From contig NZ_JMCB01000008.1 in the NCBI RefSeq assembly GCF_000737315.1, positions 248,001-312,000 of the forward strand: DNA of 64,000 nucleotides. The letters are read 5' to 3'. The position numbers were made by a program, and so were the translations under genes. The first letter of the stretch is position 1. Each line of letters begins with the position of its first letter. The stretch is from Hyalangium minutum (lineage in GTDB: Bacteria > Myxococcota > Myxococcia > Myxococcales > Myxococcaceae). Below, piece after piece: positions 3,872-61,926 of this stretch. The notes below the pieces were generated by a model. The model saw nothing but the letters and a program-made list of their open reading frames with translations, was not told the DNA's origin and made no database searches.

Positions 3872-3980
3872 CTGCTGCCAAATGCCTGAAGGCGTTCCAC
3901 CTCCTAGGTTGTTTCAAGGGAGACTACCTGTCTGGTCTTCTTTCCCGCCCGGAGGTACCTTCTTGGGAACTTCCCACGCC

Positions 3981-5387
3981 ATGCACCCCTCTACCCTTCC
4001 TCCAGGTTCGATCGTCGGCTCCTGGCGCCTGCTGGGTCTGGCCTCCCAAGGCTCCTTTGGTGCCGTCTTCCGCGCGGAGAGCACCACCGCTCCCGAGTCA
4101 GGCCCCGTCGCTCTCAAGTTCGCGCTCCAGCCAGGGGATCCCCGCTTTGCCCTGGAGGCAGCGTTTCTCTCCCGCATGAAGCACCCGAACTTGCCCCTCC
4201 TGCGGGACTCGGGCGAGTGGCACAGCCCCAGCGGCACGACCTACTCGTTCCTGGTCATGGACTGGGAGGAGGGTCTGCCCCTGTACTCCTGGGCCCGGCT
4301 CCGGCCCCGCTCCTCGCGGGAGGTGCTGCGCGTCCTGGCTCAAGGCGCCCGCGCACTCCAAGCCATCCATTCCGCCGGTGGGCTCCACCGCGACGTCAAA
4401 GGGGACCATTTCCTCGTGCGCCCCGAAGATGGGCACGCCGTGCTGGTGGACTTCGGCTCCTGCACCTTCCGCGGCGCTCCCGTCATCACCCGCAACTCCG
4501 GGCCTCCCAGCACGCCCGAATACCTCAGCCCTCAGTCCCTCGTTCACCAGTGGAGGTTCCGCCGGGATCCCACAGCTCGCTATGAGCCCTCTGTTGCGGA
4601 TGACGTGTACGCCCTGGGCGTCACTGCCTACCGGCTCGTCACCGAGCGTTACCCGCTCATCGCCGACGACGACTCCGGAACGGATGAGGGCCAGGACGAC
4701 TCCCTCCCCATCATTCCCAAACTCGTGCCCGCGGACGTGCTCGTTCAGCTCAGCCCCGAGTTGGCCCTGTGGATCCGGCAGCTGCTGTCCGTGGAGCCCT
4801 CAGCCCGAGGAACTCCGGCGGAGTTGGTCAGGGGCCTGGAGCGGTCGGCGAACACCGAGGGCGCCAAAGCGGACAAGCCCATCGGCCCGATCAGGGCTCA
4901 CTCCGCCCCCAGAAAAGCAATTCCCCAGCAAAAGCCTCCACCTCCCATGCCGAGCCGTGCGCTCCGTTGGAAGGTGTGGTTCGGCGCCACGGCCTTGACC
5001 CTTGTGTTGGTCGCTGGAGGGGGAGGACTGCTCCATGCGCAGATGGAACAATCTTCTTCCTCCGGCCAGCCCCCCACTCTCATGCAGCAGTTCCCCACCG
5101 TGCATGCAGAGACTTCAGGGCTCGGAGAACTTGAGCTCCCGGAACCTCTAAATCCATCCGAGCCCATGCCTCCACACGAGGGGATTAACGCCCCCATCCC
5201 CGATGGTCCCCTCCAAGGCCAGCGCACGCCTCCGTGCAGGAAACCCCTGGTCGAGATCAACGGTGGCTGCTGGAGCCTCGTAGGCAATGAAACGCCTCCC
5301 TGCTCCGACATCACCTATGAGTGGCGGAAGCAGTGCTACCTGCCCTTCATGGCTCCCTCGCGGCCCTTGAACACGAGAGAAAAGTAG
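3981..5387 (+). CDS. Membrane-anchored eukaryotic-like Ser/Thr protein kinase (myxobacterial type)
   Basis: GSFGAVF, VALK, HRDVKG, DFG, DVYALG motifs; one TM helix; Cys-rich C-terminus; likely start ATG 3981. Confidence 0.9.
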   Translation: MHPSTLPPGSIVGSWRLLGLASQGSFGAVFRAESTTAPESGPVALKFALQPGDPRFALEAAFLSRMKHPNLPLLRDSGEWHSPSGTTYSFLVMDWEEGLPLYSWARLRPRSSREVLRVLAQGARALQAIHSAGGLHRDVKGDHFLVRPEDGHAVLVDFGSCTFRGAPVITRNSGPPSTPEYLSPQSLVHQWRFRRDPTARYEPSVADDVYALGVTAYRLVTERYPLIADDDSGTDEGQDDSLPIIPKLVPADVLVQLSPELALWIRQLLSVEPSARGTPAELVRGLERSANTEGAKADKPIGPIRAHSAPRKAIPQQKPPPPMPSRALRWKVWFGATALTLVLVAGGGGLLHAQMEQSSSSGQPPTLMQQFPTVHAETSGLGELELPEPLNPSEPMPPHEGINAPIPDGPLQGQRTPPCRKPLVEINGGCWSLVGNETPPCSDITYEWRKQCYLPFMAPSRPLNTREK

Positions 5388-11602: not shown

Positions 11603-12214
11603 TCAGGCCCCCGAGCGCAACACCTTGAGGGCCTCGCGGAACAGCGCCTGGAAGGCGGCCTCGGGCCCCAGCCGCTCTCCGGCCATCTCCGCGGCCTTCT
11701 CCGCCTGCGGCGCCTTGTAGCCCAGGTTCAGCAGCGCCGAGACCAGGTCCGCCATGGGCCCCGCGGCCGGAGGCGGCGTCACCGCGCCCTTGGCCACGGC
11801 CTCCAGGTGGAGCGTCTTCACCTTCTCCTTGAGCTCCAGCACGAGCCGCTCGGCCGTCTTCTTGCCGATGCCGTGAATCTTGGTGAGCCGCGCCACCTCT
11901 TCCTTGGCGATGGCCACCACCAGCTCCGGCACCTCCATCCCGGACAGCACGGTGAGCGCCAGCCGCGGCCCCACGTGCGACACCGAGGTGAGCAGCAGGA
12001 ACATCTCCTCCTCGCCTCGAGTGAGGAAGCCAAACAGCTCGAAGGCGTCCTCGCGCACCACCGTGCGCACGCGCACCTGGACGGGCTGGCCCTCCGCGGG
12101 CAGCTTCCCCATCGTCAGCGTGGAGAAGAAGACACGGTAGCCCACCCCTCCCACGTCGATGATGGACTCGTCGAGGCCCTTCTCCTGCAGGGTTCCGCGC
12201 AGTGCCGCGATCAT
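11603..12214 (-). CDS. ruvA: Holliday junction branch migration protein RuvA
   Basis: MIAALRG, DVGGVGY, VSHVGPRLA, GIGKKTAERLVLELK, ALLNLGY. Confidence 0.95.
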   Translation of the reverse strand: MIAALRGTLQEKGLDESIIDVGGVGYRVFFSTLTMGKLPAEGQPVQVRVRTVVREDAFELFGFLTRGEEEMFLLLTSVSHVGPRLALTVLSGMEVPELVVAIAKEEVARLTKIHGIGKKTAERLVLELKEKVKTLHLEAVAKGAVTPPPAAGPMADLVSALLNLGYKAPQAEKAAEMAGERLGPEAAFQALFREALKVLRSGA

Positions 12215-12792
12215 CGCGCCTCCGGGCGCCGGTAGGACGGGCTCAGCCGATCCGCGAGGAGCGCCGCCGCGCCCTTGCGGCCCTTGGCGCGAGCCCCGCG
12301 AGAGCTGCCCGCGAGCAGGCCCGCGGCCCGGCCCTGGTTCAAGTGGCACAGCGCCACCGCGAGGGCGTCGCTGGCATCCGCCCGCTCAATCTCGTCGAGC
12401 CTCAGCAGGGAGCAAACCATGCGAGCAATGGCGTCCTTGCCGTCCGCGCCGCCCGCGCCCACCGAGCGCTTCACCTTCGCCGGCGGGTACTCGTACACGG
12501 GCAGCCCCGCCTGGGCCGCCGCCAGCAGCGCCACGCCTCGCGCGTGCCCCAGCACCAGGGCGCTGCGTGCGTTGCGGAAGGTGAAGACACCCTCCACCGC
12601 CACCGCCTCGGGCTTGAGGTGGCGCAGCGCGCCCGTCAGCTCGGCGTGCAGCACCATCAGCCGCTCGTGCAGTGGGGCGTTGGGGTCCACCTTGATGACC
12701 CCATGGGCCACATGGGTGAGCCGGCCCCGCCGCTCCTCCACCACGCCATAGCCCATGAAGCGGCTGCCAGGATCGACCCCTAGGACGCGCAC
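12211..12792 (-). CDS. ruvC: Crossover junction endodeoxyribonuclease RuvC
   Basis: VRVLGVDPGS, AVEGVF, LGHARG, DASDALAVALCH; ATGA overlap with ruvA. Confidence 0.95.
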   Translation of the reverse strand: MRVLGVDPGSRFMGYGVVEERRGRLTHVAHGVIKVDPNAPLHERLMVLHAELTGALRHLKPEAVAVEGVFTFRNARSALVLGHARGVALLAAAQAGLPVYEYPPAKVKRSVGAGGADGKDAIARMVCSLLRLDEIERADASDALAVALCHLNQGRAAGLLAGSSRGARAKGRKGAAALLADRLSPSYRRPEAR

Positions 12793-15921: not shown

Positions 15922-17298
15922 TCACGTGAGCCCATAGCGCTCGAGCTTCTTGAGCAGCCCCTGCCGGGAGAGCCCGAGCGCCTCGGCGGTATGGGTGCGG
16001 TTGCCATGGAAGCGGCGCAGGGCCTCCTCGATCTCCCGGCGCTCCAGGGCCTCCACCTTCTGCTGGAGCGTGGTGGCCCCTGGGGCGGGCGTGCGCGGAC
16101 GATCGCTGCCGGTGAAGGACAAGTCTTCGGGCTGAATCTCGCGCCGCTCGCCCGCGAGCACGGAGGTGCGCTGCATCTCATGGCGCAGCTCGCGCAGGTT
16201 GCCGGGCCAGGGGTGCGACAGGAGCGCCTCGGTGGCGGCGTCCGAGAGCTGCCGGGCGCGGCCATCCGGGCACAGGTGAGCACACTGGTTGAGGAAGTGC
16301 CGCGCGAGCAGCGGCAGATCCGCGGTGCGCTGGCGCAGGGGCGGCAGGTGCACCTCCACGCCTTTGATGCGCCAGTAGAGGTCCTCGCGGAAGGTGCCGG
16401 CCTGCTGCATCGCTCCGAGGTCCTTGTTGGTGGCGGACAGGCAGCGCACGTCCACGCGCGAGGGCCGATCCGCGCCGACGGGGAGGATGTCCCCCGTCTC
16501 CAGAGCGCGCAGCACCTTCACCTGGAGCGAAGGCGTCATGTCGCCGATCTCATCGAGGAAGAGCGTGCCGCCGTCGGCCTCGGCGAACAGACCACGGTGG
16601 TCCCGCGTGGCGCCGGTGAAGGCGCCCTTCACGTGGCCAAAGAGGGCGCTCTCCAGCAGGTTCTCGGGGAGCGCACCGCAGTTGACGGGGATGAAGGGCC
16701 CGGCGTGGCGGCGGCTCTTGAGGTGAATGGAGCGGGCGAGCAGCTCTTTACCGGTGCCGTTCTCGCCGGTGATGAGGACGGGGAGATCGCTGGCGGCGAT
16801 GCGCTCGGCGAGCGAGACGGCGGAGAGGAACGGCGCGCTCTGCCCCACCATGGCGGTGTCCCCACCGGCGCGGGCGAGCGAGGACTGCAGGGCCTCCACC
16901 TGCCGCTCCAGGGCGACGCGGGCCAGGGCACGCTGCACCACCACGAGGAGCACGTCCGGATCCACGGGCTTGGTGAGGAAGTCGTAGGCGCCCAGGCGGA
17001 TGGCCTCGAGCGAGTGGCGCGTGTCCCCCGCGCCGGAGACGACGATGACCTTGGTACCGGGCCGTGCGGCCAGCAGCGCGCCGAGCTGCTCCAGCCCAGC
17101 GGACACGCTGCCATCCGGCGGGAGCATCAGATCCAGCAGGACGAGGGGAAACGCGCGGGCCTCCACTGCGGCGCGGGCGGAGGGGCGATCCGCGGCCTCG
17201 ACGAGCTCATGGCCCGCGTCACGCAGCAGCCCGCCATAGACCTTGCGAAAGGCCGCGTCGTCATCGACGAGGAGCAGCGGAGGGAGAGAGGGGCTCAT
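15922..17298 (-). CDS. Sigma54-dependent Fis-family response regulator (NtrC-like)
   Basis: LLVDDD receiver, GENGTGKE, GAFTGA, WPGNLREL, C-terminal HTH. Confidence 0.92.
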   Translation of the reverse strand: MSPSLPPLLLVDDDAAFRKVYGGLLRDAGHELVEAADRPSARAAVEARAFPLVLLDLMLPPDGSVSAGLEQLGALLAARPGTKVIVVSGAGDTRHSLEAIRLGAYDFLTKPVDPDVLLVVVQRALARVALERQVEALQSSLARAGGDTAMVGQSAPFLSAVSLAERIAASDLPVLITGENGTGKELLARSIHLKSRRHAGPFIPVNCGALPENLLESALFGHVKGAFTGATRDHRGLFAEADGGTLFLDEIGDMTPSLQVKVLRALETGDILPVGADRPSRVDVRCLSATNKDLGAMQQAGTFREDLYWRIKGVEVHLPPLRQRTADLPLLARHFLNQCAHLCPDGRARQLSDAATEALLSHPWPGNLRELRHEMQRTSVLAGERREIQPEDLSFTGSDRPRTPAPGATTLQQKVEALERREIEEALRRFHGNRTHTAEALGLSRQGLLKKLERYGLT

Positions 17299-20891: not shown

Positions 20892-22004
20892 ATGGACGTT
20901 CGTGCAGCGGTCGCGTTCGAGGCGGGCAAGCCCCTGAGCATCGAGACAGTGCAGCTCGAGGGCCCCAAGGCTGGAGAGGTTCTCATCGAGCTGAAGGCCA
21001 CGGGTGTCTGCCACACCGACGACTACACGCTGTCCGGGAAGGATCCGGAGGGGCTCTTCCCGGCGATCCTCGGGCACGAGGGCGCGGGGATTGTGGTGGA
21101 CGTGGGGCCGGGGGTGACGTCGGTGAAGAAGGGCGACCACGTCATTCCGCTGTACACGCCCGAGTGCCGGCAGTGTGAGTACTGCCTGTCCCGGAAGACG
21201 AACCTGTGTCAGGCGATCCGGTCGACGCAGGGCCAGGGGCTGATGCCGGACGGGACGAGCCGGTTCCGGATTGGGAACCAGCGCATCCACCACTACATGG
21301 GGACGTCGACGTTCGCGCAGTTCACGGTGCTGCCGGAGATCGCGGTGGCGAAGATCCGGGAGGACGCTCCTTTCGAGAAGGTCTGCTACATCGGCTGCGG
21401 GGTGACCACAGGCATCGGAGCCGTCGTGTACACGGCGAAGGTGACGCCGGGGAGCAAGGTGGTGGTGTTCGGCCTGGGAGGCATCGGGCTGAACGTGGTG
21501 CAGGGGGCGCGGATGGTAGGGGCGGACATGATCATCGGGGTGGACATCAACCCGGGGCGCAAGGAGATGGCTCAGCGGTTCGGGATGACGCACTTCGTGA
21601 ACCCGCGCGAGGTGGGGGGCGACCTGGTGAAGTACCTGGTGGACCTGACGAAGGGCGGCGCGGACTACAGCTTCGAGTGCATCGGGGACGTGAAGGTGAT
21701 GCGGCAGGCGCTGGAGTGCTGCCACAAGGGCTGGGGCGAGAGCATCATCATCGGAGTGGCGGCGGCGGGGCAGGAGATCAGCACGCGGCCATTCCAGCTG
21801 GTGACGGGGCGGGTGTGGAAGGGCTCGGCGTTCGGCGGAGCGCGAGGGCGCACGGACGTGCCGAAGATCGTGGACTGGTACATGGAGGGGAAGATCCAGA
21901 TCGATCCGCTGATCACGCACATGGTGCCGCTGGAGGGCATCGGCGAGACGTTCGACTTGATGCACCGGGGCCAGTCCATCCGCAGCGTGGTGAAGTACTC
22001 ATGA
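20892..22004 (+). CDS. frmA: S-(hydroxymethyl)glutathione dehydrogenase / class III alcohol dehydrogenase
   Basis: [35 protein letters not shown]. Confidence 0.95.
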
Positions 22005-22852
22005 CAGTGCCGCTGACGTTGCTCTCGGAGCACCGCTGCTTCGGCGGCACGACGGCGTTCTACAAGCATGCCTCGGAGGCGTGCGGGGGCGAGATGCGCT
22101 TCGGCGTGTACGTGCCCCCGCAGGCGGCGACGCGCAAGGTGCCAGTGCTCTACTACCTGGCGGGCCTCACCTGCACGGAGGAGACATTCCTCATGAAGGG
22201 AGGGGCGCAGCGGGTGGCCGCGGAGCTGGGGTTGATGCTGGTGGCGCCGGACACGAGCCCTCGGGGGGCGGGCTTCCCGGGGGAGACGGACTCGTGGGAC
22301 TTCGGCGTGGGAGCGGGCTTCTACGTGGATGCCACGCAGGCGCCGTGGTCCTCGCGCTACCGGATGTTCACGTACGTCACGAAGGAGCTGCCCGAGCTGG
22401 TGGGCGCGCACCTGCCGGCGCGCATGGACCGGGAGGGCCTCTTCGGACACTCGATGGGAGGCCACGGGGCGCTGGTGTGCGCATTGCGGCAGCCGGGGCG
22501 GTACCGCTCGGTGTCCGCGTTCGCGCCCATCTCCGCGCCGATGCAGTCGCCGTGGGGCCACAAGGCCTTCGGCGGCTATCTGGGGCCGGATCAGGAGAAG
22601 TGGCGGGAGTGGGATGCGAGTGAGCTGATGCGCAAGCAGCGAGCCCCGCTTCCTCCGCTGCTGGTGGACCAGGGGACGAAGGACAAGTTCCTGACGGAGC
22701 AGCTGCGTCCGGAGTTGTTCCAGGACGCCTGCGCGGCTGCGGGCCAGTCCCTGACGCTCAGGAAGCAGGAGGGGTACGACCACGGCTACTACTTCGTGTC
22801 GACGTTCATGGAGGACCACCTGCGCCACCACGCCGCGACACTGAACGCGTAG
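22001..22852 (+). CDS. fghA: S-formylglutathione hydrolase
   Basis: [25 protein letters not shown]; ATGA overlap with frmA. Confidence 0.95.
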
Positions 22853-22866
22853 AAGGAGCGCCATCC

Positions 22867-23850
22867 ATGGTCACGACCGTCTCGCAGCTCGAAGCGTGCG
22901 TAGGGGCACCGGCCCTGCCGGTGAAGATGAAGCAGATTGACCACCTGGACCCGCTCGCGCGGGCCTGGGTGGCGGCGAGTCCGCTGGCGGCCGTGGTCGT
23001 CGCGGGTGCTCGGGGAATCTCTGTCACGCTGGCGGGCGGGGAGCCTGGGTTCATCAAGACGGAGGAGCGAGCACTGTCGCTGAAGCGCGAGCTGCTCGAT
23101 GGGCCCTTCGAGGCCAGCCCCGGAGATGGCGTGGCCCTGCTGAGCTTGGTGCCGGGCACGACCGAGACACTGCGCATCAACGGACGGGTGACGGCCTCTG
23201 ACACGGAGCTTCGCATTGCCGTCGAGGAGTGCTTCGTCCACTGCGGCAAGGCGATGATCCGCTCATCCTTCTGGGCACCGGAAGCCAGCGCTGCGGGAGA
23301 GGCCCTGGCCACGGCGCGCTTCTGCGTGCTGGCGACGGTGGACGCGGCGGGCCACGCGGATGCGAGCCCCAAGGGGGACCCGAGAGGGTTCCTGCTGCAG
23401 ATCGATGAGCGCACGGTCGCGCTGCCGGATCGTCCGGGCAACAAGCGCGCGGATGGGCACCGCAACGTGCTGGACAGCGGGAAGGCGGCGCTCCTGGCGC
23501 TGACGCCGGGGCAGCCCAAGGTGGTGCGCATTCAGGGAGCGGCCCGGCTCACCGCCGAGGAGGCCCTGCTGTCGCGCATGGCGGTGGACAACAAGAAGCC
23601 AATCATTGCGACGTTGCTCGACATCCAGGAGCGAGCTGAGTTCGCCTCCGAGGCACTGGTGCGCGCCCGGCCCTGGGCGCCCGAGCGAGTGCCAGCCCCA
23701 GGGAAGTGCCCGACTCCGGCGGAGCTGCTGGCCGCCCACGTCAAGCTCAACAAGACCCAGGGCCTGGCAGCGACGGCGGTACGGCTCGCGGTAAGGCCCT
23801 CCCTCGTCAACCAGGGCCTCGCGCACGACTACCGCATCAACCTGTACTGA
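22867..23850 (+). CDS. Pyridoxamine 5'-phosphate oxidase-like protein (tandem FMN-binding split barrels)
   Basis: ETLRINGR, HCGKAMIRS, DASPKGD, LPDRPGNKRAD. Confidence 0.8.
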   Translation: MVTTVSQLEACVGAPALPVKMKQIDHLDPLARAWVAASPLAAVVVAGARGISVTLAGGEPGFIKTEERALSLKRELLDGPFEASPGDGVALLSLVPGTTETLRINGRVTASDTELRIAVEECFVHCGKAMIRSSFWAPEASAAGEALATARFCVLATVDAAGHADASPKGDPRGFLLQIDERTVALPDRPGNKRADGHRNVLDSGKAALLALTPGQPKVVRIQGAARLTAEEALLSRMAVDNKKPIIATLLDIQERAEFASEALVRARPWAPERVPAPGKCPTPAELLAAHVKLNKTQGLAATAVRLAVRPSLVNQGLAHDYRINLY

Positions 23851-23880
23851 GTGCGGAGCAATATGACTCGCTCATGGATA

Positions 23881-24255
23881 ATGCGAGGTGTCTTGTTTCT
23901 GGGTCTATCTGCCACTCCAAGCGCGGCGCAGGCCCCTGACTGCCAGAACACTTACGACTGTTGTATCAAGCGCAATCTAGCCAATCCAGAAATCTGCGGC
24001 GCCAAGCCTACGCCAAGTCCGCCCAAATCCACTCCCGAGCGGCCACCTACTCCTCCACTTTTGCCTCATCAGGGCGAAGCCAAACGCCCTGTAAACAAAG
24101 AGCGTTGTCTTGATTCCTGTGCCGCGGGAGGACAGGTGTTCATCCAGTTCTGCAACGATATCAAAGACGCCCAAACACGCGCTGCGTGCTTCTCGAAAAT
24201 CAACGAGAGCGAAACAAGCTGCCGCAACTTCTGTTTCAATTATTTCGGTGGCTAG
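23881..24255 (+). CDS. Small Cys-rich exported protein (candidate toxin)
   Basis: Signal-like N-terminus, CxxxxxCCxxxxxxxxxxC segment, Pro linker, six-Cys C-terminal domain; more AT-rich than core genes. Confidence 0.55.
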   Translation: MRGVLFLGLSATPSAAQAPDCQNTYDCCIKRNLANPEICGAKPTPSPPKSTPERPPTPPLLPHQGEAKRPVNKERCLDSCAAGGQVFIQFCNDIKDAQTRAACFSKINESETSCRNFCFNYFGG

Positions 24256-24266
24256 AGGCCCACGAC

Positions 24267-24698
24267 ATGCCCACAGAAACCCGCCTCCCGCGAGGCACAA
24301 AGCCATCAGGCCCTATCATGGCAGAACGTCGCCTAGAGCTGACAAATAGGCCAGGTAAACATGCCATCGTTCGTGTCCGAAAGCCCGCCAGGGACTCAAA
24401 GACTGGGAACTATAAGTGCAGTGTCGAGTGGGTCCACCCAGAGGAGCGGGAGTTGTTCGAACTCTGGGGAATCGACTCAATGCAGGCTCTTCAGTTGGCA
24501 ATCCGTGCTGCTGGGGAATTGACCAAAATCCATGAAGAAAACCTGCGTTGGAGTGGTGGGCTGGAAGGGTATCTCGGATTCCCCAAGTTTTATCCAGAGC
24601 ATCTCCCCAAAGGGCTCTTGCAAAAGCTTGAACGCATGATCGAACGAGAACTTGCCGCCCACATGCGAAAACTTGAGCTGGCAGCGAGGCGCCGCTGA
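24267..24698 (+). CDS. DUF6968-like hypothetical protein (candidate immunity)
   Basis: WGIDSMQALQLA motif and GYLGFP; follows the Cys-rich gene after 11 nt. Confidence 0.55.
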   Translation: MPTETRLPRGTKPSGPIMAERRLELTNRPGKHAIVRVRKPARDSKTGNYKCSVEWVHPEERELFELWGIDSMQALQLAIRAAGELTKIHEENLRWSGGLEGYLGFPKFYPEHLPKGLLQKLERMIERELAAHMRKLELAARRR

Positions 24699-24794
24699 GA
24701 ACCGTCAAACGTCAAACCTTGGGCCCCATGAGAGTACTTCCCTCACCAGGGACCTAGAATCGGCCCATTGTTCCGCCGCGCCCTCGGTTGGTAG

Positions 24795-25541
<747 letters not shown>

Positions 25542-25548
25542 CGCCCCC

Positions 25549-25594
25549 CTATCCCCGCACCTCCACCTCGCGCACCTCGGGAGACACCTCCCGG
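25549..25594 (-). repeat. Displaced copy of the rtcA 3' end (left direct repeat)
   Basis: Minus strand encodes REVSPEVREVEVRG*, identical to the RtcA C-terminus at 30192-30237; 41/46 nt identical. Confidence 0.9.
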
Positions 25595-25691
25595 TCTGGA
25601 AACCCGCTAACCTAAGCACGCGACGGCGCAAGCAGGCGGACAGAGCCGACGGCTCTCGGAGCGGTAGTACCCAGCGTAGACTGCACTGAGC

Positions 25692-26360
25692 ATGCACCGT
25701 CTACTCCTGTTCCTCCCGCTCGCCACTGTCCTGGGTTGTGCCTCGCCGGCCCCCAGAACGTACTCCCAAGCTGTTCCTGGGCCTGCCTTCCCTGCCCCAC
25801 CCATGGCCCCAGTGGGACGAGGGGCGCCCGTGGTGGGGCAGCCTGGCGCGCAGCAGCCTCAGCCCTACCCCCGAAGCCCCCACACGCGCCCGCTGCCGCC
25901 CGCTGCCGAGCCCGGTCTCTGGGCGGGGGACGAGCCGAGGGCGAGCCGCTCGAGCAAGCCACGCCCACCAGAACTCTTCGGGGTGGCGCTGCCTAGCTTG
26001 CCCATCTCGGACACGCAGTTGGACGTGGGCCCCGCACGCGCCTGTGCAGAAGAATGGCGCCTCGCGCTCCCTGGAACGGGGTTGGATGCACGGGTACAAG
26101 CCCTCCGACAGCCAGCTCGGCAATGCATGGTGGCGCGCATGTTCCTCTTCTGCACGAGCGTCGTCGCGGAGTTGGACGACATCACCACCGAGGATGGCGT
26201 GGTGGTGCTGCAAGCGAGGCGAATGCGGGAGAACTTCCAGCGGGGCGCAGAGCGCTTTGCTCGGGAGTCGTGTGACGGGACGCAGTGGACGGCCGAGTAT
26301 CGCCGACTGTTGGACGCTCTCGCCGCCGCTCTCATCGCCCAAATGCACAGGTCAGAGTAG
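25692..26360 (+). CDS. Hypothetical lipoprotein
   Basis: Lipobox VLGC, Pro-rich region, Cys-containing helical C-terminus. Confidence 0.65.
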   Translation: MHRLLLFLPLATVLGCASPAPRTYSQAVPGPAFPAPPMAPVGRGAPVVGQPGAQQPQPYPRSPHTRPLPPAAEPGLWAGDEPRASRSSKPRPPELFGVALPSLPISDTQLDVGPARACAEEWRLALPGTGLDARVQALRQPARQCMVARMFLFCTSVVAELDDITTEDGVVVLQARRMRENFQRGAERFARESCDGTQWTAEYRRLLDALAAALIAQMHRSE

Positions 26361-26372
26361 GTATCAGACCCC

Positions 26373-26564
26373 ATGACGACTCCCAGCGATCCTCCTCCTG
26401 AGTTCGTTGCAGAGGCCCTGCAGCGCGTCCACGAGGGCATTCAAGAGAAGTTGGCGACAATGCCCCCAGAAGAGGGGCGCAAGTGGCTGGAACGTCTCTT
26501 GGCTAGGTTCATGGGCAACCCGGTGATCATCGAGACTCCAAAGCCCGGCGACGATGGAGAGTGA
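26373..26564 (+). CDS. Small hypothetical protein
   Basis: 63-aa ORF 12 nt downstream of the lipoprotein. Confidence 0.45.
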   Translation: MTTPSDPPPEFVAEALQRVHEGIQEKLATMPPEEGRKWLERLLARFMGNPVIIETPKPGDDGE

Positions 26565-26674
26565 GGGGAGCCGCACGGTGTGACAGGTGCATGGGCACCC
26601 GGAGCGGCCCCTTTCTGGCGCCCTACCCGCCTCCCAGAGTAGGGTCCCTGACGCCCTACCCGTCAGGAGGCCTC

Positions 26675-28084
26675 ATGCACGAAGACCTGCCCTCCCTCAG
26701 CTCGACCGTGGGCCCTTGGCGCATCCTCGATCGCCTCGACTCAGGCTCTTATGGGGTGGTGTTCCGAGCACAGCGCGCCGCCTCACCCGAGTCCCCGCCT
26801 GTGGCGCTCAAGGTCGCCAAGTGGCCTGAAGACCCTCGCTTCGAGAGAGAGACCGAGGCGCTCCAGCGCAGCCACCACCCGTCCATCCCTCGCTACGAGG
26901 ACAGGGGGGTGTGGACGAGCTCGACGGGCGAGAACTACCCCTACCTGGTCATGGAGGCGGTGGAGGGCTCCACCCTCTACGAGTGGTTCCGGCAGCAACC
27001 GCGCTCCAGCTTGGACGTGCTGCGGGTAGTGGCGCAGTTGGCAGGGGCCCTGACCTCCGCGCATGGCCGAGGCGTCATCCACCGCGACGTGAAGGGAGCC
27101 AACATCCGCGTCACTCCCGAAGGCCGTGCGGTGCTCCTGGACTGGGGAAGTTGCTGGTTGCCCTCGGCCCGGTCCTTGACGGACACGCCAGCGCCCCCTG
27201 GAACCAGCGCCTATCGCCCCCCCGAGCAGCGAGGGTTCATCTACGCCCACCGCAAGGACGTAGATGCACGATGGGCGTCTCGTCCCTCGGATGATTTGTA
27301 CGCCCTCGGTATCACCCTCTACCGGCTTGTCACGGGGACCTACCCGCCTCCGTGCACGGACGGCATAGGCCTCGTGGAGCGAGAGCTACTCAAGCCCTCG
27401 GTACTGGCAACGGTGAGCCCCGCTCTTGAGGCTCTCATCCTGCGGCTGCTCTCCGACGAACGAGCTGCTCGGGGCACTGCGGGGCAGCTCATGCGCGACG
27501 CCTTGCGGTTGGTGCATGCAGGAGGGGTTGACCCGCAGAAGCCCATCCTCTCTCTCCTATCCAGAAGCTCCGCCGCAGAAGACTGGAGCTCTTCGGACAA
27601 CAGCTACGACGAAGAGGACATCTCCGACACTGACCCGGCGCCCATACGGCGTGAGGGCTGGCTGCCCCCCATTTCTCCTACCTGGGCTCGTCTGTCTGTC
27701 ATGGGCTGCGCCGCGATGGCCTTCGTGTTTCTTGTAGTGTGCCCCGAGCCAAAGCAGCCGCCCCCGGCATGGCAGTCAACGCTCGAGGAGGTGGCACCAT
27801 TCGCCCCTGACGCGGGAATCGGGGAAGAGGCCCTGACGAGCGTTCAGAACGTCCCCAGCGTGGGACAGCCGAGCAACTCGTTTGGCAAGTCCATGCCCAA
27901 AAAGCCTTTTCCAGGTCAGCGCCGCCCACCGTGCGAGCGCGGAGAAAGGGAGATCAACGGCAGTTGCTGGGTGGAAATCGGAAGGGAGACGCCACCGTGT
28001 GGTGACAAGATGTATGACTACGAGGGCTACTGCTACAAGCCGTCCGTTGACATGCCTCGTGGTCCAACTTCCGGAGAACCCTAA
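26675..28084 (+). CDS. Membrane-anchored Ser/Thr protein kinase (paralog of 3981-5387)
   Basis: GSYGVVF, VALK, HRDVKG, DWG, DLYALG; GGAGG RBS; shared C-terminal GQRRPPC..EINGSCW..PPC..CY. Confidence 0.88.
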   Translation: MHEDLPSLSSTVGPWRILDRLDSGSYGVVFRAQRAASPESPPVALKVAKWPEDPRFERETEALQRSHHPSIPRYEDRGVWTSSTGENYPYLVMEAVEGSTLYEWFRQQPRSSLDVLRVVAQLAGALTSAHGRGVIHRDVKGANIRVTPEGRAVLLDWGSCWLPSARSLTDTPAPPGTSAYRPPEQRGFIYAHRKDVDARWASRPSDDLYALGITLYRLVTGTYPPPCTDGIGLVERELLKPSVLATVSPALEALILRLLSDERAARGTAGQLMRDALRLVHAGGVDPQKPILSLLSRSSAAEDWSSSDNSYDEEDISDTDPAPIRREGWLPPISPTWARLSVMGCAAMAFVFLVVCPEPKQPPPAWQSTLEEVAPFAPDAGIGEEALTSVQNVPSVGQPSNSFGKSMPKKPFPGQRRPPCERGEREINGSCWVEIGRETPPCGDKMYDYEGYCYKPSVDMPRGPTSGEP

Positions 28085-28085
28085 G

Positions 28086-28649
28086 CTAGACCTCCTCGAA
28101 CCTCGTGCCCGTGGCTCCCATGCGCTCCAAGGCATCCTTGATCTCCCCGGAGACGATCAGCGAACTCCGCCACCCCTCAAGACGGAACACCCGAGTGCCT
28201 CCCACTTTGCTCTTGTCGATGCGCAGATCGCGTACGGAGGCATACTGGCCGACCTTATGAGGGACTCCGTCCTCGTGCGTCCAGAGCCGAATGCGGGACG
28301 CCTTCTCGTCGATACAGCGAATCAGGCGTGTGGCCACGAGGATGAGGTACTGATCCGGATGGCCCTCCACGTCCACGGGGATCAGTTGCACGTCGTCCGG
28401 GGCCAGCTCCGCGAACATGGACGCGACCCGGACATGGACCACCGGGACGCTGACGTTCGCTTCCGTGTAGTCCAGTGGCTTGCCCGCGATCTCAACGGGG
28501 ATTCTCAAGCGTTCCTGGAGATGGACGGGTTCCCCGCGCCTGAACATCCTGTCGTCCACCTTCTGTCCGTAACTGTCTGTCGGCGTGTCCAGGTGCCAGC
28601 GATGCGGGAAGGTCACCTTGTCGGATAGCTCGAAATAACGCTTGGCCAT
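28086..28649 (-). CDS. Imm11/DUF1629-like immunity protein (SitI7-like)
   Basis: PVVHVRVA, LIPVDVEG, RLIRCIDE, RVFRLEGW, IVSGEIK; directly downstream of the AHH toxin. Confidence 0.8.
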   Translation of the reverse strand: MAKRYFELSDKVTFPHRWHLDTPTDSYGQKVDDRMFRRGEPVHLQERLRIPVEIAGKPLDYTEANVSVPVVHVRVASMFAELAPDDVQLIPVDVEGHPDQYLILVATRLIRCIDEKASRIRLWTHEDGVPHKVGQYASVRDLRIDKSKVGGTRVFRLEGWRSSLIVSGEIKDALERMGATGTRFEEV

Positions 28650-28670
28650 GGCCTCCATTTAGCGCGGGGG

Positions 28671-30023
28671 CTACTGGGTGACGAGTTGGTTCAGTTCTGC
28701 TCCAGGGGTGGCAATCTGCTTGGCTAACGCTCGGAGTGCTCCAGTCAACGCCTGACGGCACTCGACGACGGTGCGACAGGTTTCCGTGGCCTCGGTCAGT
28801 TCCTTGAGGATGATCTCATGATACCGCTCGGGGTGCGGTCCGTAGTGTCCCGATAGAGGCATCTTGTTCGCCGGGTCATCTAGCGACATTCCCGCCTTGG
28901 CGAAGATTGCTCGGAACCTTGGCGTCCACGGGCCCCCGCGCGCGGTGGACGTGTCGTTGCAGATGGTGGCGATGTGGTGCGTCTCGACGCAAGGGCCCTT
29001 GCCGCGACTGGGCTGCGCTGCCATGGCCACGGCGTTGGCGGGCAGCGTGATGCTCACGCCCTCGGCCGTGACCGCGATCTCCTCCATAGCCCCCAGCGCG
29101 GGCAGAGAGATTCCTGCTTGCCCCTCGGCCTGCATGGCCACCTGCGCCGAGCCGGGCAGCGTCGGCACCTTCGCAGCGAACAGTTGCGCCGTCGAGCCAA
29201 TGGCCGCCACCAGCAGCATGGCGAACGCGCGCGCTGCCTCTCGCCCGATGATCTTTCCGAAGCGCTCGCCCGCCTCGCGGATCTCCTCGAAGGTGGTTGC
29301 GGCCTTCGCCGCCTCCGTTAACTCAGCCCAACCCGTCACGAGGTTGCGGAGCGTGTCATAGCCCACATACAGCAGCATCCCGACGCCCAGCACCGCCACC
29401 AGCGCCGGAGCCACGGGATTGAGGAGCATGATCAACAGCATGGAACCCAACGTCCACAGGGCCGCGCTCATGAGCGCGCGAAATTCCACCATCTCACCCA
29501 GCGCATTCTTCATCTCGTCCAGCACCGGGCTCTTGCTCATCGCCAGTGCCCAGACGTAACGGCCTTGCATGTCCAGGTAGCGCCCTTCCACCAGCGCGCC
29601 CCCGAGACAGTCTCCATAGAAGTGGTAGGCGCTCTGGCACCAGAGCCGATAACGCTCCGCCAGCTCCAGATCCTCTTTCGTCAACGTGCCGTCCCAGGGC
29701 TCGCCGGGCCCTGCTGGCACCAGCTTCTTATCCCGCTGGAGGTAGAGGTAATTGCCGCTCTGCGGATCCATCTGAAACGCCTTTTCCGCCGTCTGGCGCG
29801 GAGTGCCTGTCAGCCGAACCTCGCGCGCAAGGCGCTTTACGGCCTGCTGGAACTCCTCTTCCTCCAGTTCCACTGGTTGCAGGTCAGCGGTGCGGGGAAC
29901 ATGGACGACGGCCTTGCCCTGGCCAGTGTCCTCCACGACGGAGACCCGAGGGATGCTGCTGCACCCCACGAGCAACACGAGGAACAGAGCTTCGGCCTTC
30001 CAGACCATCCGCCATGGCAGCAT
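28671..30023 (-). CDS. Polymorphic toxin lipoprotein with C-terminal AHH nuclease (SitA7-like)
   Basis: Lipobox LLVGC; C-terminal THHIAT...LDDPANK...HYGPHPERYH. Confidence 0.82.
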   Translation of the reverse strand: MLPWRMVWKAEALFLVLLVGCSSIPRVSVVEDTGQGKAVVHVPRTADLQPVELEEEEFQQAVKRLAREVRLTGTPRQTAEKAFQMDPQSGNYLYLQRDKKLVPAGPGEPWDGTLTKEDLELAERYRLWCQSAYHFYGDCLGGALVEGRYLDMQGRYVWALAMSKSPVLDEMKNALGEMVEFRALMSAALWTLGSMLLIMLLNPVAPALVAVLGVGMLLYVGYDTLRNLVTGWAELTEAAKAATTFEEIREAGERFGKIIGREAARAFAMLLVAAIGSTAQLFAAKVPTLPGSAQVAMQAEGQAGISLPALGAMEEIAVTAEGVSITLPANAVAMAAQPSRGKGPCVETHHIATICNDTSTARGGPWTPRFRAIFAKAGMSLDDPANKMPLSGHYGPHPERYHEIILKELTEATETCRTVVECRQALTGALRALAKQIATPGAELNQLVTQ

Positions 30024-30191
30024 GTGTCACCCCTTCTTGCGAGGAGGTGCTCAGGGTAGAGGGCAGCCACGGAGAAGAGGAGGAGCCGCCGGGTGACGCC
30101 CGTGCATCGCCTACGCCCCCCCTACGGGGGCAGCCTCCCTCCCAACACTGACGCCTCGACGCGTAATGCCTGAACGCTCCGTGTCAGGCCT

Positions 30192-31208
30192 TTATCCGCG
30201 AACCTCCACCTCGCGGACCTCGGGAGACACCTCGCGGACGTCTACCTTCACGTCCAAGAAGTGCGCGAACGTGTCGAGCTGCGTCACCGCGTGCCCGTCC
30301 AGCGGCAGCGTGCGGAACGTGCCTCCTTTCGCCAGCGCCAACAGCAGCAACAGCTGGTCGCACAGGTGCTCGCCCACCGGCACCTCCGCGTCCAGGTAGC
30401 GCTTCACCTCCGCCGCCGCGTTCCCCGCCACCTCCTCCGCTCGCACGCCCCGCTCCCCGAAGGCCGTCACCACCTCCGTCACGTGCTCGCTCTCCACCTC
30501 CAGCGTCAGCACGTTCCCCGGCCCCTGCGTGCGCTTCAGCTCCTCCGTCCGCAGCTCGTTCGGCTTCCACTTCAGCGCCTGCTCCACTGTCGCCAGCTCC
30601 CGCTTCGCTACGTCGAACGGAATCATCGCAATCAGCGCCGTCGCCTGCCGCCGCACCACCCTCCCCCGCTCCAACAGCGTCAGCGGCTTCAGCGGCGCCG
30701 GCTCCACCTTCACCTGGAACTTCCCCCCTCCCGCCGGGAAGAACCCGTGCCGCTCCAGCACCGCCTCCACCTTCGGCCCCATCCGCCCCACCAGCGGCAG
30801 ATACGACTTCTGCAAGAAGTCGAACGGCGGCGCCAACGGGTTGTGCGTCCCGCCCTCCAGCCGCAGCGTCGACGGCCCGCTCGCCACCATCAGCGCCGGC
30901 AGCACCGTCTGCAACACCAGCGTCGCGCTCCCCGCCGTCCCCACCGAGAAGAAGTAGTTCCCCGGCGCCAGCGTCCGCGGCTTGAACGTCAGCTCCCGCG
31001 AGCCCAGCTCCGCCCCCGTCACCTCCGCCGCACCTACCTCCGTCGCAGCCTTCACCGCCGTCAGGTGCTGCCGCAGCAGCCCCGGCTTCTGCCGCCCCGC
31101 ACGAATGTTCACCATCTGGAAGGGCGTCCCTGTCACCAGCGACAGCGCCAGCGACGTGCGCAGAACCTGTCCGCCCCCCTCTCCCTTCGAACCGTCGATC
31201 CGAACCAT
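30192..31208 (-). CDS. rtcA: RNA 3'-terminal phosphate cyclase
   Basis: IDGSKGEGGGQVLRTSL, PGLLRQHL, GTAGSATLV, GGTHNP, GEHLCDQL. Confidence 0.96.
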   Translation of the reverse strand: MVRIDGSKGEGGGQVLRTSLALSLVTGTPFQMVNIRAGRQKPGLLRQHLTAVKAATEVGAAEVTGAELGSRELTFKPRTLAPGNYFFSVGTAGSATLVLQTVLPALMVASGPSTLRLEGGTHNPLAPPFDFLQKSYLPLVGRMGPKVEAVLERHGFFPAGGGKFQVKVEPAPLKPLTLLERGRVVRRQATALIAMIPFDVAKRELATVEQALKWKPNELRTEELKRTQGPGNVLTLEVESEHVTEVVTAFGERGVRAEEVAGNAAAEVKRYLDAEVPVGEHLCDQLLLLLALAKGGTFRTLPLDGHAVTQLDTFAHFLDVKVDVREVSPEVREVEVRG

Positions 31209-31238
31209 GTCTCTGTCCCTCGAAATGCCAAAAGTAGC

Positions 31239-31296
31239 GGCGCCCGCTCCCCCATCCTAGCGACCGTTTCAACCGGTCTCGGGGGGAGCGGGCGCC
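31239..31296. other. Nested stem-loop in the rtcB-rtcA spacer
   Basis: Perfect 15-bp arms 31239-31253 and 31282-31296 enclosing a 5-bp stem (31262-31266/31274-31278) with a 7-nt loop. Confidence 0.6.
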
Positions 31297-31344
31297 TCGA
31301 ATGTCGCTATCCCGGCATGGCCACCTCGCGCACCCTGTCCGGGC

Positions 31345-32571
31345 CTAGCCCTTCACACACACCACCTGCCGCAGCGTGTGGACCACCTCCACCAGGTCCG
31401 CCTGCGCCGCCATCACCGCATCGATGGGCTTGTACGCAGCCGGCGTCTCGTCGATCACGTCCACGTCCTTGCGGCACTCGATCCCCGCCGTCGCCTTCGC
31501 GTGGTCCTCGAGCGTGAAGCGCTTCTTCGCCGCCCCGCGCGACATCACCCGGCCCGCCCCGTGGCTGCACGAGTGGAACGCCTCCGCGTTCCCCTTCCCG
31601 CGGACGATGTACGAACGCGCCCCCATGCTGCCGGGGATGATGCCGAGGTCCCCCTCGCGCGCCCGCACCGCGCCCTTGCGCGTCACGAAGCAGTTCTTCC
31701 CGTAGTGGTGCTCACGCGCCACGTAGTTGTGGTGGCAGTTCACCGCCGCGTCCTTCAGCCCGAACGCCGGCAACAGCTGCGAGGCCCGCAGCGCCGCCAC
31801 CACCGAGTCCAACATCAACTGGCGGTTCGTCGCCGCGTACTCCTGCGCCCACTCCACCGCCTGCACGTAGTCCTCGAAGTGCTCCGTCCCCTCCGGCAGG
31901 TACGCCAGGTCCGCGTCCGGCAGGTGGATGAAGAAGCGGCGCATGTCCTCCTTCGCCAGCTCGATGAAGTGGCTCCCGATCCGGTTACCCACCCCGCGCG
32001 AGCCGCTGTGCAGCATCACCCAGACGTTCTGCGACTCATCCAGGCACAGCTCGATGAAGTGGTTCCCCGTCCCGAGCGTCCCGAGGTGCCCCAGGTCCGG
32101 CCCACGGCCCAGCCGCGGGTGCTTCTCCAGGATGGCGTCGTAGCCGGGCTTCAAGCGCGCCCACGCCTCGCGGTGCGTCGCCGGAGCGTCCTGCCAGGCC
32201 CCGCGATCATTGCGGCCCCCGTTGTCCGTGCGGCCGTGCGGCACCACGCGCTCAATCACCGCGCGCACCGGGGCCAGGTTGTCGGGCAGCTGCTCGGCGC
32301 GCAGCGTCGTGCGCACCGCGATCATCCCGCAGCCGATATCCACACCCACCGCCGCCGGGATGATGGCGCCCACCGTCGGCACCACGGAGCCCACCGTCGC
32401 ACCGTACCCGCGGTGCACGTCCGGCATCACGGCGATCCACTTGTGGATGAAGGGCAGGCCCGCGAGGTTCTTCACCTGCTGCTTCGCCTCGTCCTCGAAG
32501 GGGACGCCGACCGTCCACGCCTTGATGGGGTTCTTCCCCTCGTCCGACAACACCTCGTAGCTGCGATTCAT
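31345..32571 (-). CDS. rtcB: RNA-splicing ligase RtcB
   Basis: MPDVHRG, VGVDIGCG, LGTGNHF, HSGSRG, CHHNY, SCSHGAGR, YKPID; likely start 32571. Confidence 0.96.
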   Translation of the reverse strand: MNRSYEVLSDEGKNPIKAWTVGVPFEDEAKQQVKNLAGLPFIHKWIAVMPDVHRGYGATVGSVVPTVGAIIPAAVGVDIGCGMIAVRTTLRAEQLPDNLAPVRAVIERVVPHGRTDNGGRNDRGAWQDAPATHREAWARLKPGYDAILEKHPRLGRGPDLGHLGTLGTGNHFIELCLDESQNVWVMLHSGSRGVGNRIGSHFIELAKEDMRRFFIHLPDADLAYLPEGTEHFEDYVQAVEWAQEYAATNRQLMLDSVVAALRASQLLPAFGLKDAAVNCHHNYVAREHHYGKNCFVTRKGAVRAREGDLGIIPGSMGARSYIVRGKGNAEAFHSCSHGAGRVMSRGAAKKRFTLEDHAKATAGIECRKDVDVIDETPAAYKPIDAVMAAQADLVEVVHTLRQVVCVKG

Positions 32572-32626
32572 GGCCTTGCCTTCCGTTCGTTCGCCCAACC
32601 CATGTGCCGGGCACGACGGGGGATAG

Positions 32627-32710: not shown

Positions 32711-34354
32711 ATGGCGAAGACACAGGCACGCAGGACGGTGGTCATCGGGATGCTCGGGACGACCATCGACCAGGGGCAGGGCCCGAGGCGGTGGGAGCGG
32801 TGGCGCCCCACGGTGGCGATGTGTCAGCAGGAGGACCTGTTGGTGGACCGGCTCGAGCTGCTCTATCCGCCCTCAGCGGGGGTGCTGGCCGCGACGGTGA
32901 CCGAGGACATCCAGCAGGTGTCTCCGGAGACGGAGGTGCGCGGGGCCGTGGTGGACATCCGCGACCCGTGGGACCTGGAGCAGGTCTATGGCGCACTGCT
33001 CGACTACGCGCGGAAGTACCCCTTCCAGCCCGAGCAGGAGGACTACTTTGTCCACATCACCACCGGGACGCACATCGCGCAGATCTGCATGTTCCTGCTG
33101 GTGGAGAGCCGGCACATCCCCGGCCGGCTGGTGCAGACCTCACCACCCTCGGGCCGGGACAAGGGGCTGGGCGGCGCGGGGGGGCACACGCTCATCGACC
33201 TGGACTTGTCGAAGTACGACAAGCTGGCAGCGCGCTTCCAGCAGGAGCAACGCGAGGCCCTCTCCTTCCTGAAGGCGGGCATCGACACGCGCAACCCCGC
33301 GTTCAACCGGCTCATCGAGCGCATCGAGCAGGTGGCAATGAGCTCGCGTGCACCGCTGCTCATCACCGGGCCCACGGGGGCGGGCAAGTCCCAGCTCGTG
33401 CGGCGCATCTACGCGCTGAAGAAGGCGCGGCGGCAGGTGAGCGGGCCCTTCGTGGATCTCAACTGCGCCACGCTGCGCGGGGATGGAGCCATGTCCGCGC
33501 TGTTCGGCCATGTGAAGGGGTCCTTCACGGGAGCGGTGAGCGATCGGCCTGGGCTGCTGCGGCAGGCAAACGGGGGCGTGCTGTTCCTGGACGAGATTGG
33601 CGAGTTAGGCGCAGACGAGCAGGCCATGCTGCTGCGAGCGCTGGAGGACAAGCGCTTCCTGCCGGTGGGCTCGGACAAGGAGGTGGAGAGCGACTTCCAG
33701 CTCATCGCGGGAACGAACAGGGATTTGCAGGCCGAGGTGGAGCGCGGGCGCTTCCGGGAGGACCTGCTGGCGCGCATCAACCTGTGGACGTTCCGGCTGC
33801 CTGCCCTGCGCGAGCGCCCCGAGGACATCCCGCCGAACCTCGTCTACGAGCTGGACCAGGCCTCCCAGGCGCTGGAGCTGCGGGTGACGATGAACAAGGA
33901 GGCGCAGGAGCACTTCCTGCGCTTCGCCACCTCATCCGAGGCGCGCTGGAGCGGCAACTTCCGGGACCTGAACGCGGCGGTGCTGCGCATGGCCACGCTG
34001 GCCTCGGGTGGGCGGATTACGCGGGAGGACGTGGACGAGGAGCTCACCCGGCTGCGCGCACAGTGGACGAGGGGGGCCTCTCCCGCCTCTGCGGGTGCGG
34101 TGGATCTCGTGGCGGAGGTGCTGGGCGCCGAGCTGGCAACGGAGCTGGACCGGTTCGATCGGGTACAGCTCGCGGATGTCATTGCCGTGTGCCGACAGGC
34201 CCGCACCTTGTCGGAGGCCGGGCGCGTGCTGTTCGCGCAGTCCCGCGCGCGCAAGGCGAGCACCAATGACGCGGACCGGCTGAAGAAGTACCTCACCCGC
34301 TTCGGGTTGGACTGGAGTGACGTCTCAGGCCGGAGATCTCCCGAAGCCGCCTGA
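32711..34354 (+). CDS. rtcR: RNA repair transcriptional activator RtcR (CARF + sigma54 AAA+)
   Basis: RWERWRPTV, HITTGTH, GPTGAGKS, GSFTGA, WSGNFRDL; divergent from rtcB. Confidence 0.95.
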   Translation: MAKTQARRTVVIGMLGTTIDQGQGPRRWERWRPTVAMCQQEDLLVDRLELLYPPSAGVLAATVTEDIQQVSPETEVRGAVVDIRDPWDLEQVYGALLDYARKYPFQPEQEDYFVHITTGTHIAQICMFLLVESRHIPGRLVQTSPPSGRDKGLGGAGGHTLIDLDLSKYDKLAARFQQEQREALSFLKAGIDTRNPAFNRLIERIEQVAMSSRAPLLITGPTGAGKSQLVRRIYALKKARRQVSGPFVDLNCATLRGDGAMSALFGHVKGSFTGAVSDRPGLLRQANGGVLFLDEIGELGADEQAMLLRALEDKRFLPVGSDKEVESDFQLIAGTNRDLQAEVERGRFREDLLARINLWTFRLPALRERPEDIPPNLVYELDQASQALELRVTMNKEAQEHFLRFATSSEARWSGNFRDLNAAVLRMATLASGGRITREDVDEELTRLRAQWTRGASPASAGAVDLVAEVLGAELATELDRFDRVQLADVIAVCRQARTLSEAGRVLFAQSRARKASTNDADRLKKYLTRFGLDWSDVSGRRSPEAA

Positions 34355-61842: not shown

Positions 61843-61926
61843 GCCCAGGTGGTGGAATTGGTAGACACACTAGATTCAGGGTCTAGCGCCTGCAAGGGCA
61901 TGGAGGTTCGAGTCCTCTCCTGGGCA
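61843..61926 (+). tRNA. tRNA-Leu (anticodon CAG)
   Basis: GCCCAGG/CCTGGGC acceptor stem, ctaga-TTCAGGG-tctag anticodon arm, long variable arm, GGTTCGAGTCC T-arm; CCA not encoded. Confidence 0.95.

Follow-up and report, generated by a model that had tools for sequence, protein, structure and literature searches.

Some genomic islands insert at the 3' end of a tRNA, tmRNA or protein gene and leave that gene restored. A locus with this outward architecture is present in Hyalangium minutum DSM 14724, within the 64-kb stretch of DNA analysed here (the window): a direct repeat derived from the 3' end of the RNA-repair gene rtcA flanks accessory cargo, and rtcA itself is intact. The first-pass annotation had read the 4.6 kb between the repeat copies as one integrated element that brought its own replacement rtcA end. 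Unlike 3'-end islands, however, this locus has no integrase, its boundaries vary, one of them lies inside another gene and its cargo is composite. We propose that the repeat is probably the scar of homology-facilitated illegitimate recombination (HFIR) between alleles of the locus, and not the border of an island.

HFIR was proposed in the T6SS (type VI secretion system) loci of Vibrio cholerae for the origin of orphan immunity arrays and also for Rhs C-terminal displacement (Kirchberger et al. 2017, PMC5361080). The two cases are alike in that toxin/immunity DNA would enter beside a conserved anchor with one homologous and one illegitimate end, old immunity genes are kept as orphans, the locus is mosaic and an integrase is absent. 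The corresponding features of the window are an orphan SitI6 gene, a DUF6968 gene and stacked 3'-end remnants. In contrast to V. cholerae, the anchor here would be the housekeeping RNA-repair operon (rtcBA) or the S-formylglutathione hydrolase (FGH) gene, both outside the toxin delivery system; the toxins are SitA lipoproteins delivered by outer membrane exchange (OME) and not T6SS effectors; and the scar duplicates the end of a gene that is not a toxin gene. Displacement in Rhs and contact-dependent inhibition (CDI) systems, as far as it is described by way of PMC5361080 (Jackson 2009; Poole 2011; Koskiniemi 2014), is similar in that the resident 3' end gives way to an incoming one and persists downstream as a remnant. 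In that account the displaced tip is a different toxin domain of a toxin gene, whereas here both ends encode the same peptide and rtcA would be a bystander.

SitA toxins are lipoproteins that are passed between myxobacterial cells by OME; they fall into six families, and 25–80 sitAI loci, often horizontally acquired, are present per genome (PMC8546572). The toxin cassette of the window resembles described sitAI cassettes (Vassallo 2017, PMC5562445; Vassallo 2021, PMC8546572) in having a SitA5 escort domain and an AHH nuclease followed by an immunity gene. It differs from those cassettes in its location, a chromosomal hotspot that is free of mobile-element genes, and in its ends, which are trimmed in comparison with paralogous copies.

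For comparison, 75 rtcA loci were retrieved; loci are cited by L numbers. The comparison also includes L087, a 6-kb Logan contig of sample SRR33780596 that was found by a search with the lipobox open reading frame (ORF) of the window; the sample of L081 is SRR31724269. The two copies of the repeat, copy A (25549–25594) and copy B (30192–30237), were read directly from the sequence. They are identical at 41 of 46 nucleotides (nt), and their minus-strand translations both give REVSPEVREVEVRG*, the C-terminus of RtcA. All five differences are at third codon positions (CGG/CGC, GTG/GTC, GTG/GTT, CGG/CGC and TAG/TAA) and are synonymous, as the first-pass annotation had reported. In a simulation, the probability that five random substitutions in a 46-nt stretch would all be synonymous was ~7e-4. 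A degenerate-pattern search allowing three mismatches recovered only these two copies in the window, with none expected from shuffled sequences; the 46-mer is therefore not the dispersed repeat that would have undermined the first reading of the locus.

Copy B is the genuine 3' end of a 338-amino acid (aa) RtcA (Pfam RTC, E=1e-75; RTC_insert, E=7e-16), encoded next to RtcB and a divergent RtcR and 85–96% identical in aa sequence to RtcA of the Hyalangium-clade loci L001–L005, L038, L064, L082 and L083. Copy A lies outside any gene: it lacks a start codon, and an in-frame TAG stands five codons upstream of it. The similarity of the two copies has abrupt limits, the stop codon at one end and position -46 at the other. 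Each nucleotide state of copy A is also found in working rtcA alleles of relatives. Because the divergence between the copies is synonymous only, both rtcA ends evolved as working genes in different lineages, and copies A and B come from two different functional rtcA alleles. The earlier suggestion that the incoming end came from another functional rtcA allele thus holds as far as the existence of two functional alleles is concerned. It does not hold as to which end came in, since the two ends cannot be told apart in this respect; identity of the 46-mer to L082, for example, is 43/46 for copy B and 41/46 for copy A, a difference of few sites.

Two kinds of allele meet at the inner edge of copy A. 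The stretch 24824–25594 is collinear with SitI6 and the intact rtcA end of L004 (72% identity) and L083 (85%); in either case the alignment breaks off precisely at 25594. In these two loci SitI6 is followed by a convergent, intact rtcA without a remnant, i.e. the empty-site arrangement for which the first-pass annotation had advised a search among relatives. To the right of 25594 the window continues with TC and then with the 14-mer TGGAAACCCGCTAA, which encodes ..ETR*, whereas the window's own SitI6 ends in ..LATR*. This 14-mer occurs three times in 1.53 Mb of fetched sequence: here and at the SitI6 stop-codon ends of L004 and L064. L087 carries, in this order, FGH, a PNPOx-family gene, DUF6968, an intact SitI6, the same spacer, the lipobox ORF, the small ORF, the kinase and Imm11. 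The end of its intact SitI6 gene reads ..TTGGAAACCCGCTAG, with the ending TGGAAACCCGCTAG, and no rtcA remnant is found in this contig. The window is 92% identical to L087 over 25597–28431, and the match begins exactly at the 14-mer (25597). Further left, 21855–23851 is 95% identical to L087, but the middle part, 24263–25530, just 79%, and the SitI6 proteins of the window (LATR*) and of L087 are 77% identical.

At the joint, rtcA at -46 is fused to SitI6 at -14, and the joined sequences are unrelated. Because the L004/L083 and L087 alignments meet at this point, the window can be described as a splice of two alleles, its left part coming from one with SitI6 followed by a convergent rtcA and its right part from one like L087. 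Positions 25594–25597 thus mark a single illegitimate joint between two alleles of one hypervariable locus. Downstream of it, 25615–25652 represents the distal ~38 nt of a DUF6968 3'-end remnant that is common to the window and L087; in L081 a DUF6968 remnant of 59 nt aligns with the 3' ends of the DUF6968 genes of the window and of L082.

The sequences show the joint, the two parental arrangements, the separate history of sitA5-sitI5 and the variability of the interval; from them we infer the HFIR mechanism, the route by which the DNA entered and the order of events. The left parent carried DUF6968, SitI6 and a convergent rtcA, as L004 and L083 do, and was cut 46 nt inside rtcA. The right parent carried SitI6, the lipoprotein gene, the small ORF and the kinase on one strand and, following them on the opposite one, SitI5, SitA5 and rtcA, an arrangement as in L087; here the cut fell 14 nt ahead of the stop codon of SitI6. 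An ordinary homologous recombination in a conserved flank would have provided the second crossover, with donor DNA from a related Hyalangium. Selection would then have kept products with an intact rtcA, SitI6 and lipoprotein-kinase operon, and such selection for intact genes would concentrate the visible breakpoints near gene ends. Two orientations may be envisaged. If the rtc operon was the site of the homologous crossover, the incoming DNA would have comprised 4.6 kb together with a new rtcA end, which is close to the picture drawn by the first-pass annotation, minus an element. If FGH/PNPOx was the site, it would have comprised 1.7 kb (ORF134, DUF6968 and SitI6), and 46 nt of the donor's rtcA would have travelled along. 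HFIR fits best because unrelated sequences are joined, no recombinase is present and each side offers a long conserved anchor, FGH/PNPOx (95% identical to relatives) on the one and the rtc operon (81–93%) on the other.

The 4.6-kb block itself is composite. By its domains the AHH lipoprotein is a SitA5-family polymorphic toxin of the OME-delivered class: the SitA5_escort profile matches residues 13–280 with 315.6 bits (cut-off 160), Pfam AHH is found at residues 334–437, the N-terminus ..LFLVLLVGCSS, read by eye, is a lipoprotein signal with a lipobox cysteine, and the toxin gene is followed in the same orientation, after 12 nt, by the Imm11 gene. The sequence 28086–30162 recurs at three unrelated loci (93% nt identity in L078, 88% in L080 and 87% in L079). 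It is missing between the kinase and rtcA in L081 and L082, where the kinase lies directly against rtcA; in L087, Imm11 is present downstream of the kinase. The kinase keeps an intact C-terminus in the window, where sitA5-sitI5 is inserted between the kinase stop codon and the hairpin located shortly after the stop codon of rtcA. From its absence in L081 and L082 it follows that the pair arrived in a separate event, as a 2.08-kb module. Fixed cassette ends are lacking, since homology between paralogous copies of the module runs 120–170 nt further upstream and 60–90 nt further downstream. The claim that the 4.6 kb entered as one element is contradicted by the L081 and L082 arrangements and by the presence of the module at unrelated loci. 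Separately, a repeat of ~130 nt follows sitI5 in L080 (11970–12105), and ~15 copies are present within 5 kb of L078 (14800–20100), partly at a spacing of 412 nt.

The kinase belongs to a large, fast-diverging Hyalangium paralogue family that is resident in the FGH–rtcA interval, and its closest relatives (66–94% aa identity) all lie between FGH and rtcA (L081, L082, L083 and L087). L081 and L087 are equally similar to it over its 5' half; its 3' half is 90–98% identical to L087 and just 44–81% to L081. Synonymous divergence (dS) from L081 is 0.62 for the kinase versus 0.13 for the adjacent lipoprotein ORF. The kinase gene is thus mosaic, and the values point to a homologous recombination breakpoint inside it.

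Among relatives, homology on the left ends at the FGH stop codon (22845–22853 in L001–L005, L082, L083 and L087) and on the right it restarts at or just past the rtcA stop codon (30174–30202 in L001–L005, L038, L064, L071, L082, L083 and L087). The interval between FGH and rtcA measures 2–5.5 kb in Hyalangium-clade relatives and its cargo differs: SitA6-SitI6 pairs (L004, L064, L081 and L083), SitI6 alone (L005), DUF6968 (L003), kinases of the window's paralogue family (L001, L002 and L005), an MFS transporter with a Kelch protein (L002), an insertion sequence (IS)-like ORF (L038) and, in Hyalangium-clade relatives, an M23 peptidase. The flanks are conserved, at 85–95% on the FGH side (the upper value being that of 21855–23851 against L087) and 81–93% on the rtc side. 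G+C content is 0.54–0.66 over much of 23800–30200 as against ~0.69–0.71 in the flanks. The comparison supports the proposal, made in the first-pass annotation, of a recombination hotspot in which kin-discrimination cassettes gather, with the rtcA end at its border; the SitA5 and SitI6 family matches make the term 'kin-discrimination cassette' apt.

Direct-orientation remnants of the rtcA end were found downstream of rtcA in three other lineages, L081, L064 and L069 (Pyxidicoccus). The L081 remnant of ~77 nt has six nonsynonymous changes and is joined to DUF6968 at -59 with a microhomology of ~3 nt (CGC). That of L064 measures ~86 nt including 8 nt past the stop codon and is decayed; the cargo consists of ORF289, SitI6 and SitA6. 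In L069 the remnant is ~55 nt long and the cargo is a single PLD-helicase-DUF3427 gene. Remnant lengths are therefore 46, ~55, 77 and ~86 nt, with partner sequences that are all different, and the L081, L064 and L069 remnants are independent events. Inheritance of the window's remnant from the same event as that of L081, followed by rearrangement, was considered and rejected: copy A is undecayed, with no nonsynonymous change against six in L081, and together with L087 this indicates independent joints. A further fragment, the last ~96 nt of the PLD-helicase-DUF3427 gene that is complete in L069, is left beside the rtcA stop codon in L048 (11018–11112).

Several observations weigh against HFIR as we describe it. 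The joint has no clear microhomology: the two nt TC are unassigned, and a CCGG/CCCGG match is offset by a few nt. A SitI6 exactly like that of the window was not found beside an intact rtcA, as L081, L083 and L004 are only approximate; L087 ends inside Imm11, so that its SitA5 and rtcA have to be assumed, as has the route by which DNA would enter Hyalangium. The identity matrix of the 46-mer does not discriminate the recipient parent. In addition, four lineages break within the last 46–86 nt of rtcA, and this clustering could reflect a site preference, which simple HFIR with selection does not predict. The last 50–90 nt of rtcA, at a convergent gene end, might then be a preferred breakpoint, used repeatedly in H. 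minutum, L081, L064 and Pyxidicoccus L069 by a specific process that captures toxin-immunity and defence cassettes lacking an integrase, and the remnants would go beyond neutral HFIR debris that selection has sifted. We consider such a process unlikely; the candidates for it are a recombinase that acts in trans and recognises this sequence and a fragile site created by transcription or replication at the rtcA terminator.

A site-specific integrative island, whose attP would mimic the rtcA 3' end, whose integrase would since have been lost or would act in trans, and which would have displaced the original end, would account for a direct repeat of the target gene's end flanking the cargo (41/46 nt), for the restored rtcA, for the recurrence of rtcA-end remnants in four lineages and for toxin/immunity and defence cargo of the kind typical of islands. 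However, no integrase lies in or next to the interval: within 22853–30191 no ORF has integrase or recombinase features, the long ORFs all belonging to other families or being conserved as non-recombinase genes. On this the first reading, which had listed a lipoprotein, a small ORF, a Ser/Thr kinase and an AHH toxin-Imm11 pair and no integrase, agrees with the profile and ORF evidence. Nor does the 4.6-kb block show similarity to phage or plasmid records. The repeats vary in length among lineages and have different partners, the distal 'end' falls 14 nt within a SitI6 gene of which L087 has an intact version, L081 and L082 are without sitA5-sitI5, and the kinase and lipoprotein genes are ordinary residents of the interval in relatives. 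Given L087, the island is largely refuted, and with it the notion of an element carrying its own replacement end; we regard it as very unlikely. A local tandem duplication of the SitI6/rtcA junction within the genome, followed by divergence and by insertions between the copies, is even harder to credit. It has in its favour that the two duplicated pieces, the ends of rtcA and of SitI6, are parts of one junction, but a dead copy should gain random changes and not five synonymous ones. The SitI6 remnant is moreover of the LETR* type, unlike the resident LATR* gene, whose protein is 77% identical to that of L087, and L087 has the right-hand arrangement on its own; in-genome duplication is disfavoured.

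Finally, a circle containing the last 46 nt of a donor rtcA and the cargo, closed by an illegitimate join to SitI6 at -14, could have entered by a Campbell-type single crossover with the resident rtcA, duplicating the 46 nt. This would yield exactly the architecture seen, including the joint between rtcA at -46 and SitI6 at -14, and would dispense with a second crossover. It would rely, however, on 46 nt of homology with 11% mismatch, over which RecA-type recombination should be very inefficient, although long anchors of 85–95% identity are on offer on both sides, and the formation of the circle would be an additional step that no evidence supports. We consider the circle unlikely, and HFIR between alleles remains the reading that we prefer.

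The genes of the interval and its surroundings are listed in Table 1. Exact matches to the RtcA and toxin proteins are confined to one public contig, JMCB01000008.1 (assembly GCA_000737315.1) of H. minutum DSM 14724. FGH is 85–86% identical in DNA sequence to its counterparts in relatives. The adjacent PNPOx-family gene is 95% identical in nt sequence to L081 and L087 and has no match in the interval of L001–L005. The region of ORF134 (23862–24694) is 82% identical in nt sequence to L082 (1722–2555), and the NCBI annotation calls just a 39-aa fragment of it. ORF134 as listed overlaps the start of the DUF6968 ORF; probably one of the start sites is wrong or the gene is decaying. DUF6968 homologues are located in the same interval in L003, L082 and L087, and the gene is likely an orphan immunity-type gene. 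The SitI6 protein matches TIGR02264 with 360.7 bits (cut-off 100), and its ratio of nonsynonymous to synonymous divergence (dN/dS) against L081 is 0.22. SitA6 precedes SitI6 in L004, L064, L081 and L083; the window contains no SitA6 (TIGR02269) gene, and ORF134 and DUF6968 stand upstream of SitI6 instead. Since it has no SitA6 partner, the SitI6 of the window is an orphan immunity gene. The lipobox ORF has no family match and ~30 homologues, all unnamed; it is 92% identical in aa sequence to L081 and 90% to L087, and a metagenome scan with it returned three distant contigs only. Both this ORF and the 63-aa ORF beside it are probably real genes, judging by dN/dS values of 0.32–0.38 against a relative (0.32 for the lipobox ORF). 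Beyond rtcA, the homology of L005 extends 18 nt past the rtcA stop codon and includes an equivalent hairpin.

Table 1. Coordinates of the features at and around the FGH–rtcA interval in the window.
Feature	Position	Strand	Remarks
ADH3	20892–22004	+	
S-formylglutathione hydrolase (FGH)	stop at 22852	+	
Hypervariable interval	22853–30191		between two conserved convergent gene ends (FGH stop 22852, rtcA stop 30192)
PNPOx-family gene	22867–23850	+	Pfam PF01243
ORF134	23851–24255	+	possibly decayed; homologous to 128-aa gene of L082
DUF6968 gene	24186–24698	+	Pfam PF22302
Orphan SitI6 (double-CXXCG)	24825–25541	+	NCBIfam TIGR02264; C-terminus LATR*
Copy A	25549–25594	-	dead 46-nt 3' end, assigned to a second rtcA allele; 7 nt from SitI6 stop codon
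Joint	25595–25610	+	2 nt 'TC', then last 14 nt of a different SitI6 allele, TGGAAACCCGCTAA (..ETR*)
Older remnant of DUF6968 3' end	25615–25652	+	upstream of lipoprotein gene
Lipobox ORF	25692–26360	+	222 aa; signal peptide end ..VLGC
Small ORF	26373–26564	+	63 aa; conserved beside lipobox ORF in L081, L087; dN/dS 0.38
Ser/Thr protein kinase	26675–28084	+	469 aa as annotated; Pfam Pkinase
sitA5-sitI5 module	28086–30162	-	with 139 nt upstream
Imm11 immunity gene (sitI5)	28086–28658	-	
SitA5 AHH lipoprotein toxin	28671–30023	-	NCBIfam NF050093
Native rtcA-proximal spacer	30163–30191	-	short hairpin GCCTGA..TCAGGC
rtcA, intact	30192–31208	-	last 46 nt (30192–30237) = copy B; Pfam RTC, RTC_insert
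rtcB	31345–32598	-	
rtcR	32711–34354	+	

In the spacer between rtcB and rtcA (31209–31344, minus strand) a very stable hairpin, GGCGCCCGCUCCCCCC...GGGGGGAGCGGGCGCC (-68 kcal/mol, z -3.6), precedes a U-run. Its conservation is strong in L001–L005, L038, L064 and L083, and an Rfam search gave no match; it could be an internal terminator or attenuator, or an RNA linked to the Rtc system. A stretch at 31307–31334, which matches copy A at 24 of 28 nt and was considered as a third partial copy of the repeat, was rejected, as it corresponds to the conserved rtcB–rtcA intergenic stretch in relatives. In Archangium loci 1.2–1.5 kb of extra DNA is present between rtcB and rtcA (L011 and L021) or between rtcR and rtcB (L022), so that other junctions of the rtc operon also take insertions. 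The IS-like ORF of L038 (Hyalangium versicolor) follows rtcA at 11793–12773 and has weak HTH_32 and DDE_3 matches; in this locus FGH is not found within 10 kb and synteny is broken. Elsewhere in the window (3864–5345 and 15961–16908) the same broad kinase family has another member, and there is another RtcR-like sigma-54 activator, each with 37% aa identity. A tRNA-Leu(CAG) at 61843–61927 is the sole RNA gene detected in the window.

The locus is a new, well-resolved example of a known process. For annotation, it means that repeats of this kind should not be called att sites before alternative alleles have been compared. sitAI loci define kin in myxobacteria, and their movement off prophage-like elements is little described at the sequence level; the window provides a case, resolved to the base pair, of the exchange of SitA5/SitI5, SitA6/SitI6, orphan immunity and kinase genes among Hyalangium lineages. 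Homologous recombination would bring about this exchange, and illegitimate joins, occurring now and then, would leave 3'-end remnants, here of rtcA, SitI6 and DUF6968, that are stacked and can be read as a record; the locus also explains how orphan immunity genes accumulate.

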